Below are positions 21,715 through 28,865 of a DNA stretch of 64,000 nucleotides, in pieces; within the stretch, counting starts at the first letter, position 1; each line of letters starts with the position of its first letter. The stretch comes from Ascidiella aspersa (lineage: Eukaryota). A program made the position numbers and the translations under genes. The stretch covers positions 24,180,001-24,244,000 of the forward strand of contig OZ004613.1 of the NCBI GenBank assembly GCA_963924565.1. The letters are read 5' to 3'. A model generated the notes under the pieces. It was not told where the DNA came from. It saw nothing but the letters and a program-made list of their open reading frames with translations, and searched no databases.

Positions 21715-22782
21715 ACCTAAAGCGTTCCCTCATGCTGTGTTGAGCTTTATTTAAAAGCGCAAAAAAGATTCTTTAGTCGAAAGACTTTATTATGGTGAGA
21801 ATACCAAAAATGTCCTCGCATCACTGATTACTTGTTTTTGAGAACCACTGATCCATCTCCTTCAGTATAATTTTCGTCATTAACAGCTTTAACTTAGGTA
21901 AAGAAACAAACCTGTTTTCGGAATAAACACGGTTTAAGTATTAGGTAGGCCTACACTTTAGCGTTATGATTACTAACTCATCGTTGTCTACAACTCGTGG
22001 CATACATGTAAGCAAGTTCGACTGTAACCTCAATTATTCTATATAAGTATAAATAGATGTTTCTTAGCGACGTCCCTCATTGTATCATTAAGTTACCAAG
22101 TTAATGCTTTCTAACCTATTTCTATTAATTATATCAGTACGTTTTATTTGTTTTATGCAAAATATTTACCCAAAGGTGCCGTATAAATAATGGCACGTTC
22201 GGCCTTCCTTATTTGCCAATTTAAACTAAATTTACGCATTTTTTGGACTTCAGCTCCTTATTTGTGCACAAGTTTCCGAGATCAACGAAAATTGCAAAAT
22301 TAGCGTTATATATACCATTTATTTTGTTAATAATGATCTAATGCCGTCATCAACTCGATTTATCGCCTTGGTCGTATTTGGTCTTTTTTGTTATATTTAG
22401 TATACTCTTTAATATAAGACCAATTTGAGCCCAATTTTTTAGCCCTTACCAATATCTGGATGACGTATAAAACACGCTATTTTTCGCGTCGTACCAAACG
22501 TAGATACAAATGCTATACTTTCAAACTAAAATATCACAATAAGAGTTACGCAAGAGTCTGCGGTCTAAACTTTAAATTAAATCGAATGACAAATGCCTGT
22601 TTTTCGTCGTCTCCCCAATTCTCTAATAAAGAACCTATACCGACATAAATATGTACATAAAATTTATTGAAAAAGTCATAAAATACAAATTAATGAAGTT
22701 TCAAACAATTTTTTCGGCGCCGGCCGAATGGTTGTAAACCATGCGATCACATTGTCTTTATAGAGAAATCTCTCGAGATCAC

Positions 22783-25700
22783 TCAAAACATGAGTGGATC
22801 GACTTGCAACTGTTTGGGGATGTTGCAAGTGTACAGCCAAGCTTCCACCTCCTCTTCTTCTGCGTCAGTCATCTTGTATAGGTGCGGGGTTCGATCGCAC
22901 AACTGGCGGATATCTTCGTTTGTAATCAGTGGCAGGTCGTCGGGAAACTCATAAACTAAATCCAGCAGTTGTGGTTCCAGATCGAAAAACCTGGAATCGT
23001 CTAACTGCAAATCAAGGAAGATTTTAATGCCATATAAAATATTGAGTAAGAACTAATCAATGAAAATGATTTACCTGTATTTTTCCTAACCGCCGTGCAC
23101 CACCGGAAACGCATGGGACGAGGTTAAAAGGTTCCGCCAGTTCCTTAATTTCATCGAGGAAGTCAACCTCTTCCAAAATTGTTCTTCTCATCCTAGTTGG
23201 CTTCCTCATCTTGCCGATGACAGAAGATGAGGTGCAGCGATGCTCAGGGTCATCTTGAATCCTGAACAACTTCTCCCTTGTTAAGGCTCTTTGCATGCTT
23301 GCCATCCAATCTTCCTCTTTTTTCTTATCCAGTTTTGGTACATGGACAGTTAGCGACTCTGAAATTGCAGACGACTTACTTTTGGGCACCATTTTAAGCG
23401 CATCACTCAAGTCTTTCGGTGTGATTTGAAGATTGGATCCACAACGCTTGGACACCGGTCGTTCCAACTTGCTTGGCTGTCGCATTTTTGACTCGTTCTT
23501 TACTACCATTTGAACCTTGTGGTTGGTCGGCGCACGGAGTTTAGAGGAAGAATCAACTTTATTTGGTGCCTTAAGTCTTCTTGGTGGACAAAGTTTAGAA
23601 GGAGAACCATTGGGTGCGTTGTGAGAGCTGGATACAGCTGTCAACTGAGAAGTGCTCACTTTTATCGCTGTCTTGATTGGGTTTGGTGTCCGCAGTTTGG
23701 AGTGAGATCCAGCAGCAGCAAGTTTTTTTGTCTTTGGTATTTCGCCAAGTTTTGACGGAATGGAAGACCTATCTTGTGGTGATTTTTTAGATCTTGCCTT
23801 CTTCGCCAGCCGTTGTGCGTCTTTTTTTGCCTGCTGTGCCAACTCCTCTTGGTAGTACCGTTCCCAGTCTTCTTCAGTGGGAGACTGGCGAACGTGTTTT
23901 TTCTTTGGTAGTTGATTAATAGATTTCATAATTTCATCAACTACAAGAAGTGTATCTTTGCTCGTTGTATCTCCGGGATTACGGAGGGAATTTATGTCCT
24001 GTCTTTTGCAATATGCCCTTCTTTGCAGTCGCTGTGCATCCTCTTTTGCCTGTTCTGCCAACTCCTCCTGGTAGTACCTCTCCCAATCTTCTTCGGTGGG
24101 AGTTGTTCCAACGATTTCTTCATTAGGCAATTTGTTAATTGCCTTTATGATATCGTCATTGCTGAATTTCGGGATTTTGACAAAAGGGTGCTTCCTTTTG
24201 GACCATTTCTGAAGCCAATATTCATGTTCTGGATCAAGGAATCCTCCTAGTTCATCTGATCCTGGATAGCTTGTGACGACAACATGGGACTTACTAAGTA
24301 CTGGGCGCAGTCTTTTTGCCACTACGGAAGATTTGTCGGTTTTATTTACTTTCTTCGAAGTACCAGCCCTTGCTGGAAGAGTAGTAGTTTGTGTTCCTTT
24401 GTTGAACTTCGACCTGGGTTTTAGCGCCGGCAACATTCGAACAGTTCCAAAAATAGTTTGGGTGAATGTGGTTGCGCTTTGTCGTTTTTGTAGGGTTCCA
24501 GTGTCCGATGTTAGTACATAATCCGGTTGAGTTTGAGTTGTTTGTGTGCTTACAGGCGAACCAACGACTGCTACAGTCTGGGTGGAAAGAGTAATACCAG
24601 CACTTTTGGAAGTCTGAGACGCTGAGAGCATGGGACGTTGGAAGGTCTGAGTTGAAGTCGACACAGCAAGTGACTTTGAACTTTTCGAATCATGTCCAAT
24701 AGTTTGAGTGAAAACAGGGGCGGTTGTCGAAATAGAGGTCTGTGTGGATGCGGGTTTACCAACGGATTGGGAAGTCTGGGTTGGAACTGACTTGAGGATC
24801 GGATTAACCGTTTGGATACGGGCGGGCATGAAGCATTTTCTGATGGTCTGTGTTGGAATTGGCGGTACGACAAACTGAAAGGTTTGGCTTGCGACAGATA
24901 GGGATTGTGCTTTTACTAAGTTAATCGTCTGGCTTGAGCTGGATTGAGTAATTGGGCGCTTTACAGAGGATTTGGCAGGTTGAATCGTGCAATGAATGAA
25001 GAGCTGCTGCGGTGATTTAGACACGGCCTTGATATTTTGGCTGCTCTCTGTTAAACGTAGGGGGAGAGTCGGTGATTCTAAAGGTGACTGGGCTAAACGA
25101 TCCTGTACCCTACGCTGCTTTACTTTAGTCAGAAGAGCATTAGCCTTGGTCAAGACATTCCTTTCCAAGTGAGCAAGGAATATTTCAAACATGTCGGAGG
25201 TGATGATAAAATGTACGCAAGGTCCATTAATCGGAAACCCTGTTTGAAGAAACACAACCATGTCAGCAGGTAACAGGAACGGTTCGAATGGTAATTTGGG
25301 AGAAGGTTTCGCAATGGACTTCACGGCGACATTTGATAGACCTATAAATACACAAATATGGGTTAAAAGGTGTACAACTAAGCCCAAGGCAGTAATCAAT
25401 ATAAAATCCCACAGCAATTACCTCGCAATCCTATATTTTCGAATTTCTTTCTTGCCGGAATGCAAATTGTCAGCAACTTATCGTTGTTTAGGTTGCTTGA
25501 AATCTTTGTGAAAAAATATTGCATGTACAAATTAACAAATTTAGACATAGACACTTACAGGTAACAAAAAATGGTATTCATACATTGAAAGCTTAGTCAT
25601 AGCAACGGCTTACGCAGAAACGTAAGAAAAAGGGCATTACTAAGGGTTATAGTTCTTTAAAATTAGAATAAATGTTTGCTTGGTTTATAAATATAGCATT

Positions 25701-27780
25701 TTCCGAATAAATGTTAATTCGCAGAAAATTCTGTCTGTCATTAAAACAAGACTATTAAAAAATGTAGAGGTAGTTTGACGCAAAAGGACGACGTTTTCTT
25801 TTTACATTTTTTCCACCACTTTTTACAAGCCGACGTTATGATCTTGCTTGTAGTTGGTGCCGTATTGTATTGTCATACCTTATATGAAATGAGGCTCACA
25901 GGTTAAAAAAGTCGTATATCCTAGTACAGTGGTCGGCAAATTTATTTGTCGCGGACCAAAATACTCTTTTTAAAGCTATTGAAGGCCCACTACGTAAAAC
26001 AACTACAAAACAGGGCGGATCCATGATATTTATTTTAAGTTGGAGGCATTAGAATGACGTCACAGAGTTACGTCATGAAACAATTTTTCTTAGAAACACT
26101 TGTTGTATTAAACGAACTCGTGAGCAAATATGAAGCTAAAATCCAGGTGGCGAAACGTTTACCTTAGACCAGCGGTTCTCAACCAGTGGGACATAAAAAC
26201 ATTTGAGGTGGGCAACAGACCGATTTAAAAAAGTTAGATTTAGTTTCTTTTGTGTATTTAATTTTACAGGAATAATGGCTTGGGTAAGAATTAAAAAAGA
26301 TATGTAAATTTATTGTTCAGCTGCAAGTATCTCACTAATGCACGGTTGAATTAATAATTTCTGTTTTGAAATATGTTCTGCTGTGCTTTGTTCTAAATCT
26401 ATTTTACAGTTTTTTCTTTCAAAAAAATGTGTTGGGCCACAGAATTTATTTGCAACGTAAATGGGTCACGAAAGAAAAAAAGTTGAGAACCACTGCCTTA
26501 AACGTATTAATGCATAAAAGATTAAAACTATAGCATTTCCATAGCGGATGGCGGCAGCCGCAATCACGTCAAAAAAAAACGCTCGAAACACATAAAAGGA
26601 ATACATTATGTTAATCCTGTAGTGAAATCTGGATAAATGTTACTCACGATACATTAGCAATATTACAATGTTCAATAAAAGAAATACATAAACTAGATAA
26701 ATGTTGGTAGAAATTGTATTTTGTAGGGAGTCTAAGTCAACCCAGCGTTAGTCTGTGGACACCAAAAAAGCGTGAAATATTGCATGGCACCTTGATGCAG
26801 AAAACAATGTCATAATATAAAACAAAACATACTATAAAACGATAATATACGCGCGAATCGCAAAAAAATTGCGTTTACATATAGTTGAAGTTGAAAAATA
26901 TAGTTGTCGGTTCCTCACAGCAACGCATATATACAACAGGTGTTGCTCACAGTGCCACATTTACCACGCTGGCCTGATCCACGGTGAGACAATATAACAT
27001 TTTTTAGACACACCGACTTTTTAAATACCGTACAATACAATATATGTAGGCCTACAGCATTCACGCGGCCCATAACTAAATAATAAAACAAAAACATTAA
27101 AAAAAAGCTCGCGGCCCACTTAATATGGCTCTGTGGCCCACGGTTTGCCGGCCACTGTCCTAGTACATAACGTTGATTTTTAGGAATAGCAAAATATCGC
27201 ATTCAAAAGTTCAGCCGCATCCTAAAACTGGAGAATTTTGTTTTTACTTATTTTTAAGAAAACTTAAATTAATGCAGCTATTCCGATCAAACAACTGAAA
27301 TACTGGTGTAACCTATGCTTTACCTTCAAGCCATTTTCAAGTGCAGCGTTCCTGGAACGCACAATTCTTCGTAGAAAGGATACAAACCTAAACAACGTTG
27401 CAAAAAAACAAACATTGTAAGATAGCTGTTAAAACTCAAGTGTAGATTATGTTAAATTACATGGCTATCGAAACAAAAACATTCAAATAAATATAAAGTT
27501 TGTTAATTCATAAACATATTTACCTTTCCACGAGAACACATCCACCCTCGAAGAGTGCGATAAACACCATCACGCTGACCAACAACATAGCGATGTTAAA
27601 AGCTAGGTTGGTCTTCAGTTTTACCAATGAGTCAGGGACCATTGAATAGAAGCATTTCTGCAAAGCCTGGAAATCATTCGCAGGCTGCTCTGGTTCGAAC
27701 GTAATGCCGAACAACCCATTGAAGGGCTCAAACAGTTTCGAGTCGATTCGAATAAAAATCATAGCTTTCGCTTCTGCCAT
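22783..27780 (-). CDS. Uncharacterised single-pass membrane protein (~963 aa) with TQT-motif array, basic SxIP-like region and duplicated EEDW modules
   Basis: Exons 27780-27524, 27387-27324, 25503-25422, 25341-23075, 23004-22783; GT-AG, phases 2,0,1,0, no stops; AATAAA at 22668-22663. The internal duplication differs mostly at synonymous sites. Linking the first two exons to the rest is less certain than exons 3-5; an alternative first exon is 25600-25559. Confidence 0.75.
25927..27157. mobile_element. hAT-type non-autonomous element hosting a nested MITE
   Basis: TIR CAGTGGTCGGCAAA / TTTGCCGGCCACTG; perfect TSD TCCTAGTA. Confidence 0.85.
26170..26495. mobile_element. Nested hAT-type MITE
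   Basis: TIR CAGCGGTTCTCAAC / GTTGAGAACCACTG; TSD CCTTAGAC / CCTTAAAC. Confidence 0.85.
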
Positions 27781-28865
27781 AAATTTCTGTCGTTCCCGAC
27801 AAAAGACATTGAACGAATATGACAAAAAATGTAAAAAAAAACTTTGCCCTGGCGAAAATCCATTGTTTCAAGTCGCTTGTGACGTAACAGAATCTTTGAA
27901 AAACTACTGAATTTAACAAACTTTTCGGAAATTACAGTCAAATCTTTTACAAATACTGCATTAAAACACCCATTAATAAGAAAATAACACACCTATAGTT
28001 AATTTTTTTAGTATTACTTGTTCATGGCAAGAATAAAAGCATACAGCCACATGTAAGAAACCGAGCGTCGTATTAAAAATCAAAATATTGGCACGCTGTT
28101 TTTAAAATTGGCATACGCGGATACTGTATTTTGTTTAGTTTTTTGTTGTTCTGTAGTTAACACCGACTGGTTAACACTATATAAAGGACACCTATATATG
28201 CTATATGCAGCCAACCAAAGCTTCAAAAGTAGTCCGCTAAACTTGTTACATTTTTAATTCAAAATGGTAGGTAGGACAGCAGCAATTATTTGCTATAAAC
28301 ATTTGCTTGACTAATGCCTTATGTAAGAGGCAGAAAAACAGTTTAGACCAGTGGTTCAAAGTTGGCAATATCTCCCTTTTTTGCATTTTCTATTTTTGCA
28401 TTGAAGAAATACAACGGGTGTCGAAAAACCGTGCACTATTGTCTAATTCAGGGTGGGTGTGCTAACATCACAAAATTCTGAGTTACTTTCCTAAAAAAAT
28501 CATTGTTAGTCAAAGTCTGGAAGCAAGTACCAGGGAAATTTGGAGCAAAGTACCAGGGAAATTTGCATCAACCCTAATTGTTCTTTGTGCTTTGTAAAGC
28601 CCAATTAAGTCAAGTATTAAATGAGAAAAAACAACTATCAATTAGTGAACAGTTTTTTTTAATAACGTCATCACAAAACTACTTAATTTCCTGTTTCAAC
28701 AATAAGGATAGTTTTAAAAGAGGTAAATACCTAAATCCAATTTACAATTGCCATTAAAGGGTTTTTGCTATAAGCGTATGATCCGAAATGTTTCCAAACA
28801 CGTTTGCATAATTATTATACAATTTACATCATTACACATTTCTATTTCAGCTTAGTAAGTTGACT

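Follow-up and report, generated by a model that had tools for sequence, protein, structure and literature searches.

Multivalent clients of the dynein light chain LC8 are few, and current work on the rules that make rods of their disordered chains (motif strength versus linker length) draws on three or four proteins. We know of no well-studied multivalent LC8 client that has a membrane anchor. Here, we describe a gene of the sea squirt Ascidiella aspersa that lies within a stretch of 64,000 nucleotides (GenBank assembly GCA_963924565.1, contig OZ004613.1, forward-strand positions 24,180,001 to 24,244,000), referred to below as the window and numbered from its first base. The gene encodes a predicted membrane helix followed by a long tail that carries 14 [T/S/I]-Q-T motifs at a nearly regular spacing. 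We lean modestly toward the reading that its product is a membrane-anchored, mostly disordered, multivalent client of the LC8 type, in which LC8 dimers would zip pairs of tails into a rod.

The LC8 motif is described as eight residues long, with Gln as position 0 between two branched residues, −1 and +1, that are buried (PMC6607443, PMC3078936), and the published anchor is [T/V/I]-Q-[T/V] (PMC3078936). The dynein-light-chain interaction domain of yeast Nup159, which binds Dyn2/LC8, is reported as a disordered run of QT-anchored motifs with linkers of 4 to 5 residues, on which LC8 stacks along two parallel chains to give a rod (10.1101/2025.07.16.665182; PMC10046861). The L2 linker of KANK1, which resembles the tail described here, is disordered and membrane-proximal, with at least 15 sites, linkers of 3 to 4 residues, and weak motifs that bind cooperatively, and the KANK1-LC8 rod of more than 50 nm spans the gap between membrane and microtubule (10.1101/2025.07.16.665182). 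Short and even linkers, such as those of the two clients, are said to favor rigid, cooperative, and fully occupied ladders (10.1101/2025.07.16.665182; PMC10046861). ASCIZ/ATMIN resembles the window array in having many TQT motifs, seven of them in Drosophila, in a disordered region rich in Ser, Thr, and Gln (PMC10046861). In RSP3, an array of LC8 dimers on a disordered stretch stiffens the stalk, much as proposed below for the window protein (PMC3392930).

The window protein also differs from each of these systems. Nup159 has five sites and is a nucleoporin, not an integral membrane protein, whereas the window protein has 14 anchors with poorer flanks; the two share no sequence similarity. The KANK1 motifs are without the canonical anchor that is present here, and KANK1, which shows no homology to the window protein, is a peripheral protein held via liprins and has coiled-coil and ankyrin domains. 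RSP3 is axonemal and has neither a membrane anchor nor sequence similarity to the window protein. ASCIZ is a nuclear transcription factor with N-terminal C2H2 zinc fingers, its linkers are partly long and partly short and give heterogeneous complexes, and its human form has 11 TQT motifs; the window array is regular, and no zinc-finger family was found in Pfam at E values up to 1 for exons 1, 4, and 5.

The gene has five exons on the minus strand (27780..22783), with GT..AG borders at all introns, and encodes 963 codons plus a stop (2,892 nucleotides, as the sum of the exon lengths). Its parts are as follows:

27524..27780, minus strand: exon 1, 257 nucleotides, with the ATG at 27780, a 58-amino-acid N-terminal segment, and the helix LAFNIAMLLVSVMVFIALF; ends AG/gtaaat.
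27324..27387, minus strand: exon 2, 64 nucleotides, with the basic patch FVSFLRRIVRSRNAALENGLK (FLRRIVRSR); completes the Arg codon split by intron 1.
25422..25503, minus strand: exon 3, 82 nucleotides, ISSNLNNDKLLTICIPARKKFENIGLR plus 1 base.
23075..25341, minus strand: exon 4, the main exon, 2,267 nucleotides, with 755 whole codons from 25339.
24374..24949, minus strand: QT array, exon-4 residues 131 to 322, with 14 [T/S/I]QT anchors, mostly 12 residues apart.
23780..24094, minus strand: two (S/T)PTEEDWERYYQEELA.QAK.DAQRL helix modules and their spacer, exon-4 residues 416 to 451 and 489 to 516; a repeated motif, predicted helices.
23420..23779, minus strand: basic SKLxxP region, exon-4 residues 521 to 640, with four SKL..P motifs and SSIP at 525; predicted disordered.
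23075..23416, minus strand: C-terminal family core B, exon-4 residues 641 to 755, with EEDWMASMQ..., DDPEHRCTSSSV.GKMRK, and EEVDFLDEIKELAEPFNLVPCVSG.
22783..23004, minus strand: exon 5, 222 nucleotides, 73 codons and TGA (22785..22783); with LDDSRFFDLEPQLLDLVYEFPDDLPLITNEDIRQLCDRTP...

The original prediction, made from the letters of the window, had placed the ATG, the stop, the helix LAFNIAMLLVSVMVFIALF of exon 1, and the FLRRIVRSR patch of exon 2 correctly on the minus strand, and the features that it named in the tail (QT-motif array, acidic-Trp modules, basic SKL region, and further modules) are all present there. Its exon model overlooked the 82-nucleotide exon at 25503..25422, and the tail behind the helix and basic patch, although long as claimed, has ~860 rather than ~850 amino acids. 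Exon 3 is required for the reading frame because exon 2 ends in phase 0, while exon 4 can be read in frame only with one base contributed by the exon before it. In 7 of 7 aligned paralog loci, exon 3 has conserved splice sites; for exon 2, the AG acceptor and GT donor are kept in 6 of 6. The first two exons (27780 to 27324) belong to the same gene, as had been assumed: a helix-carrying exon lies 2.1 to 3.4 kb upstream on the same strand in all 10 of the other intact long copies described below, and such an exon also accompanies the core exon in short members of the family.

The abundance of the motifs in exon 4 is far above what its composition would give. TQT occurs 10 times (0.39 expected; none of 2,000 shuffles reached 10), and [TSIV]QT occurs 14 times, as 10 TQT, 3 SQT, and 1 IQT (1.41 expected; none of 2,000 shuffles reached 14). 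Gln and the following Thr are present in all 14 motifs, and position −1 is T, S, or I. The Gln residues at exon-4 positions 152, 164, 176, 188, 200, and 212 are exactly 12 apart, and so are those at 242, 254, and 266, a period that leaves 4-residue linkers around an 8-residue motif. AlphaFold predicts the array to be disordered, within an unstructured stretch (residues 75 to 362) with a predicted local distance difference test score (pLDDT) below 50.

A tandem DNA repeat was considered as the source of the array and was rejected on the divergence of the units and on Tandem Repeats Finder, which returned no tandem array on the DNA, only a 10-nucleotide by 2 match. Outside the three anchor codons, the 14 units of the window gene have a base identity of 0.30 (0.27 expected from composition), and their non-anchor residues have an identity of 0.10, equal to the random value of 0.10. 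The anchor bases are 0.73 identical, with Gln encoded seven times by CAG and seven times by CAA and Thr by all four of its codons. Since identity outside the anchors is at chance level, synonymous codons are mixed, and no tandem array was found, the anchor and the spacing are all that is retained among units, which we read as the signature of a selected short linear motif. This comparison within one gene carries more weight than that between copies. The same tendency is seen among the 11 paralogs, in which 36 of 45 anchor columns are invariant (ratio of nonsynonymous to synonymous divergence [pN/pS], 0.32) versus 82 of 147 linker columns (pN/pS, 0.54), although these column counts are not independent because the copies are related by descent. 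Between 10 and 13 TQT motifs are retained in every one of the 11 long copies.

The window array fits the published LC8 anchor in its invariant Gln and +1 Thr and in the T, S, or I at −1, and the genome encodes LC8 itself (six Dynein_light matches, all above the cutoff). On the mechanism that we propose, the gene product would be a single-pass membrane protein, with the 58-amino-acid N-terminal segment, one helix, and a disordered tail that probably faces the cytosol. Each of the 14 [T/S/I]-Q-T anchors would take up one LC8 (DYNLL) dimer, and LC8 would join two parallel chains, zipper-like, into a rigid ladder or rod that projects from the membrane and holds up to ~14 LC8 dimers. The far end of this rod would consist of the conserved C-terminal modules, namely, the two EEDW helices, the HRCTSSS...VDF...NLVPCVSG block, and exon 5. 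On this reading, these modules are the ancestral business end of a sea-squirt-specific family, and the QT array with the ~130 residues preceding it is an insertion limited to a recently amplified subfamily. We consider binding of LC8 by the QT array to be somewhat probable.

The gene had been called an orphan, a description that holds outside its genome, where no believable relative was found, but not within it, since the genome holds at least 10 further intact long copies. A six-frame genome search with exon 4 gave at least 84 matches, among them at least 11 full-length copies without a stop, i.e., that of the window and 10 others that are 81 to 86% identical. The corresponding search with exon 1 gave 60 matches, and exon 1 is 91 to 94% identical and free of stops in 11 other loci; an exon 1 at this identity accompanies every one of the other 10 intact long copies. 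An older, short-form subfamily consists of a first exon with the helix, a core exon of ~150 to 250 amino acids, and a last exon, with no QT array. It has core B in common with the long form at 52 to 55% identity and exon 5 at 39 to 56% identity. In the four closest short-form copies, the residues equivalent to ~326 to 435 of the window exon 4 directly abut those equivalent to 689 to 754. Three parts of the long form are therefore insertions: the QT array together with the ~130 residues that precede it, the second EEDW module, and the SKLxxP region.

Constraint is distributed unevenly along the long form. In pooled pairwise comparisons of the 11 intact long copies, which are related by descent, pN/pS is 0.43 for the whole of exon 4, with 0.19 for core A (residues 323 to 440), 0.31 for core B (641 to 755), 0.39 for the second EEDW module, 0.50 for the QT array, 0.56 for the N-terminal block, and 0.72 for the SKLxxP region. 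No motif is better conserved across the family than the first EEDW helix module.

The single predicted membrane helix and the basic patch behind it, both part of the original description, are present in exons 1 and 2. The helix is internal (residues 59 to 77), and a hydrophobic segment of ~19 residues is kept across the family (LAFNIAMLLVSVMVFIALF here and LSFNLTMMVFAVIMLIGLCI in short forms) at an exon identity of only 28 to 37%. The helix of the short forms has an acidic stretch on its N-terminal side (four acidic residues out of 16) and a basic one on its C-terminal side, an arrangement that would place the tail in the cytosol.

RNA reads from one run under the same species label were set on positions 22450 to 28440, along with two DNA contig sets. 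RNA depth is almost wholly in one mate orientation, which in usual stranded libraries corresponds to minus-strand RNA. It amounts to 14 to 35 over 27250 to 27849, 12 over 25450 to 25649, and 10 to 48 over 22850 to 25449, falling to 0 upstream of 27850 and to ~0 to 1 in intron bins outside the repeat at 25850 to 26649. Exon by exon, the depth is 28 to 35 in exon 1 (one strand only), 13.9 in exon 2 (bin 27250 to 27449), 12.2 in exon 3 (bin 25450 to 25649, versus 0.2 in the next bin), and 10 to 48 in exon 4 (one strand). The similarity of strand-specific depth over exons 1 and 2 and over exons 3 to 5 agrees with one gene. In 21 RNA reads whose alignment to the window ends at 23002, the remaining sequence matches the donor region of exon 4 in an L015/L016-like paralog, which shows the splice between exons 4 and 5 in a sister copy; for introns 1 to 3, exon 3 included, there were no junction reads among the joints listed. 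A 6-nucleotide deletion at 24671, seen in 21 of 40 reads, is the two-residue deletion present in most paralogs. Among the best-supported RNA differences listed, 39 fall in exons, of which 18 are synonymous and 21 are not.

Several observations weigh against the LC8 rod. A TQT anchor by itself is reported to be not enough for LC8 binding (PMC6607443). Favorable flanks, in the published accounts, have a hydrogen-bonding residue at −4, K or R at −3, and D, E, or P at +2, with no Pro before the anchor and no bulky residue at −2 (PMC6607443; PMC3078936). The 14 motifs do not carry this favorable pattern: D, E, or P is found at +2 in 0 of 14 and K or R at −3 in 1 of 14; position −4 is Ser in 4, S, T, or N in 8, and Pro in 5; and Pro and Phe each occupy position −2 in two motifs. 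This leaves only ~5 motifs (Q at 137, 231, 242, 254, and 317) without one of the listed negative flank features. The paralogs are so close (synonymous divergence, pS, of ~0.1 to 0.17) and so related by descent that the contrast between anchors and linkers is modest evidence. In the window copy, the net charge is +1 before the helix and, after it, 0 over 15 residues and +3 over 21. By the positive-inside rule alone, the tail is most likely cytosolic, a prediction that is clear in the short forms and weak in the window copy. The RNA, finally, shows a family transcribed with this exon structure, but its support is at the family level and not for this particular copy, because 873 of 1,138 reads are only 90 to 95% alike to the window (51 reads are at least 99% alike) and the window letter is missing from all reads at many places (e.g., 47 of 47 reads at 22951). 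On balance, the link to LC8 that had been proposed is plausible with respect to the canonical anchors, the 12-residue period, the predicted disorder, the higher conservation of anchors than of linkers, and the presence of LC8 genes, and it is at odds with the mostly non-canonical flanks. In KANK1, weak LC8 sites are reported to bind cooperatively all the same (10.1101/2025.07.16.665182).

The best surviving competitor, which we consider unlikely, is a fast-evolving, lineage-specific membrane protein whose function resides wholly in the core (EEDW helix, HRCTSSS...V.F block, and exon 5), with the array as a non-LC8 spacer or insertion, a relic of an old 12-residue repeat, or the target of another reader. 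The short-form members, which work without any QT array, agree with this, as do the stronger constraint on the core (pN/pS of 0.19 and 0.31 versus 0.50 for the array), the poor LC8 flanks, and the window copy itself, in which two TQT motifs have already changed to SQT relative to most paralogs. A decayed repeat, however, should lose its anchors as fast as its linkers, whereas Q and T are kept here in 14 of 14 units, with mixed synonymous codons, while identity between units outside the anchors is at the random level, the anchors are more conserved than the linkers among copies, and the exact 12-residue spacing persists.

A reversed topology, with the N terminus inside, the tail outside, and the Ser/Thr/Pro-rich array as an O-glycosylated, mucin-like extracellular stalk, is very unlikely. 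It would suit the composition of exon 4 (11% Ser, 9% Thr, and 7.5% Pro), the small charge difference across the helix in the window copy, and the 58-residue N-terminal segment, which is rather long to be passed across the membrane. The acidic and basic flanks of the short-form helix point the other way, and so do the highly charged helices downstream, which are typical of cytosolic proteins. Mucin stalks are, moreover, normally tandem repeats at the DNA level, which the array is not, and Pfam searches found no signal peptide or known ectodomain.

The original prediction went further than LC8 and read the protein as a tether that links the membrane of an organelle to LC8 and also, through EB1, to the tips of growing microtubules. 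We regard this full model as highly improbable and hold out little prospect for its EB1 part. KANK1 would be the nearest functional analogue of the idea. STIM1, a single-pass protein of the endoplasmic reticulum membrane, tracks microtubule plus ends through a T-x-I-P motif in a basic, Ser-rich region of its cytosolic tail; it differs from the window protein in having EF-SAM and CAD domains, and TTLP and SSIP occur here at chance frequency. In favor of the model, TTLP directly follows the last TQT in a basic, Ser/Thr-rich context (KFNKGTQTTTLPARAGTSKK) and is kept as T-x-L-P in 11 of 11 copies (TILP in L016). The SKLxxP repeats, on which the microtubule link had leaned, do not match the EB1 motif [ST]x[IL]P. 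True matches number two in exon 4 (TTLP at 319 and SSIP at 525) versus 1.49 expected, and 883 of 2,000 shuffles gave at least two. EB1-binding motifs of the SxIP class are embedded in basic, Ser/Pro-rich stretches that lack acidic residues; the TTLP context fits this, whereas SSIP is accompanied by Asp at −3 and Glu at +6. SSIP persists in 4 of 11 copies and is SSFP or lost in 7 of 11, and the SKLxxP region around it is the least constrained part of exon 4 (pN/pS, 0.72).

Least probable of all is that the S/T-Q sites form an SQ/TQ cluster domain for ATM/ATR-type kinases in place of an LC8 array: 13 [ST]Q sites do lie among the 14 anchors within 190 residues, and ASCIZ combines an SQ/TQ cluster with LC8 motifs, but the invariant residues are the Q and the next T, the phospho-acceptor before Q varies and is Ile in one unit, and the membrane anchor would make access by nuclear kinases unlikely.

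Downstream of the array, the two EEDWERYYQEELA helices are followed by the four SKLxxP repeats. Both motifs exceed expectation in exon 4, with EEDW present three times (0.00 expected; none of 2,000 shuffles reached three) and SKL..P four times (0.05 expected; none of 2,000 shuffles reached four). An AlphaFold prediction made with 22 family sequences has a mean pLDDT of 36 and leaves residues 75 to 362 and 518 to 641 unstructured; only the two long helices (416 to 451 and 489 to 516) exceed a pLDDT of 80 (blocks of 82 to 86). The predicted template-modeling score (pTM) is 0.19 for exon 4 and 0.22 for the short-form core, and models predicted at these values are too poor for fold comparison. The absence of a recognizable folded domain from the tail, as first described, agrees with this mean pLDDT and with the lack of any Pfam match above the cutoff. 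A reading of EEDW(E/L)RYY as a kinesin-light-chain W-acidic motif or as an LC3-interacting region was dropped, given the Leu that follows Trp in the short forms and the confident helix predicted for this segment.

Two elements of the C-terminal modules resemble known binding motifs. One is a K/R-x-V-x-F/W element (KSVHF, RKVHF, RGVHF, CRVNW, and SGVDF) in the conserved C-terminal block of the short forms, which we take to resemble the RVxF docking motif for protein phosphatase 1. The window long form reads EEVDF at this place, and the RVxF-type pattern has 0 matches in its exon 4. The short-form loci with this element are as follows:

L009:5375-5893, L030:2764-2943, L033:2365-2814, and L035:2842-3066: short-form paralogs with the K/R-x-V-x-F/W element, equivalent to window 23150-23200.

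At the start of exon 5 (22990 to 23004), DDSRFFDLEP bears a loose resemblance to the FFAT motif, i.e., two Phe residues in an acidic tract that binds VAP. This element is suboptimal for FFAT at about three positions and absent from the short forms, and the paralogs have FFDLE, FFNLV, or FFELK.

Sequence, profile, and Pfam searches of databases gave no believable relative, in agreement with the original impression that the protein belongs to no known family. All of these searches used single exons as queries. A word-indexed sequence search with exon 4 found no believable relative, and a HMMER scan of 1.84 billion representatives gave one match (E value, 4.8e-4), to an SH3-domain protein with an SQTFNDVLRNLP repeat, over the array only, which was judged to be a repeat coincidence. 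That protein has 884 amino acids, three SH3-like C-terminal regions, and ~30 copies of the 12-residue SQTFNDVLRNLP repeat; it thus also has a QT motif with a period of 12 residues but is otherwise unrelated. A profile of 18 core sequences found no believable relative among candidates of 0.55 to 1.75 times the query length, a range that has the ~340-amino-acid short forms at or beyond its limit, and a profile of 22 long and short sequences likewise found none. The ESM Atlas gave no usable match. The best sequence match in the PDB, phage T4 gp6 (E value, 9e-4; 22 bits over helical segments), was taken as chance. Pfam gave nothing above its cutoffs on the window exons and one short paralog; SPEM1 (PF15670) scored 14 bits against a cutoff of 27 (E value, 0.035) over 44 low-complexity residues, without a match in the short-form paralog, and was set aside. 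A limited literature search found no paper describing this gene family.

Nine of the 10 other intact copies lie on the same contig as the window and one on another contig. Seven of these nine fall into two clusters, at 21.50 to 21.55 Mb and 21.72 to 21.80 Mb. The first (21505034 to 21545663) holds four long-form copies on the plus strand at a spacing of 11 to 13 kb, and the second (21726450 to 21802093) holds four on the minus strand, one of them broken. The genome also contains three near-full copies with stops and dozens of fragments on nine contigs. Homology among seven loci spans the whole gene with its introns, from ~22495 to 28200 to 28860 in window coordinates, including ~0.4 to 1 kb upstream. 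Since it runs through the introns and the upstream flank, the copies are DNA-level duplicates of the whole gene and not retrocopies. As a separate observation, the homology shared with dispersed copies elsewhere in the genome, on other contigs, stops downstream of the gene at almost one position (22495 in L016, L018, and L025; a break at 22492/22493 in L014), and the gene may travel as a defined unit with this sharp 3′ end.

Two further features lie within or next to the gene. One is an insertion in intron 2 that is not part of the gene product:

26170..26495, strand not assigned: dispersed repeat of ~326 bp.

This repeat is private to the window copy, as the paralog loci align straight across 26169/26496. 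Word depth over it in the DNA runs is 100,000 to 287,000, and RNA there is found on both strands. The other is an upstream ATG in 27781 to 27812, a stretch kept in 7 of 7 aligned paralog loci; its short frame of 16 codons runs across the main ATG in a different phase. This upstream ATG might be removed by trans-splicing at an AG that immediately precedes the main ATG.

If LC8 does not bind, the genes described here would be an ordinary lineage-specific family of disordered membrane proteins. If it does, the family would offer a natural series for the study of LC8 rods, with 14 canonical anchors on weak flanks, a near-constant 4-residue linker, at least 11 intact copies with slight differences, and sister genes that lack the array. 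We hold more tentatively, and with some doubt, that this sea-squirt lineage has the first integral-membrane LC8 clients of high valency, in which a rod of tens of nanometers would keep an effector module at a set distance and in which an array was inserted into a short protein that then gave rise to at least 11 intact genes at a synonymous divergence of ~0.1 to 0.17. The array presents a clear case of motifs that seem to have been kept by selection after other traces of a repeat had vanished. The long copies also show how a gene subfamily arose and was rapidly amplified, and, on the more tentative view just given, the pace of this amplification would point to strong selection in the recent past, such as in reproduction or in the buffering of LC8.

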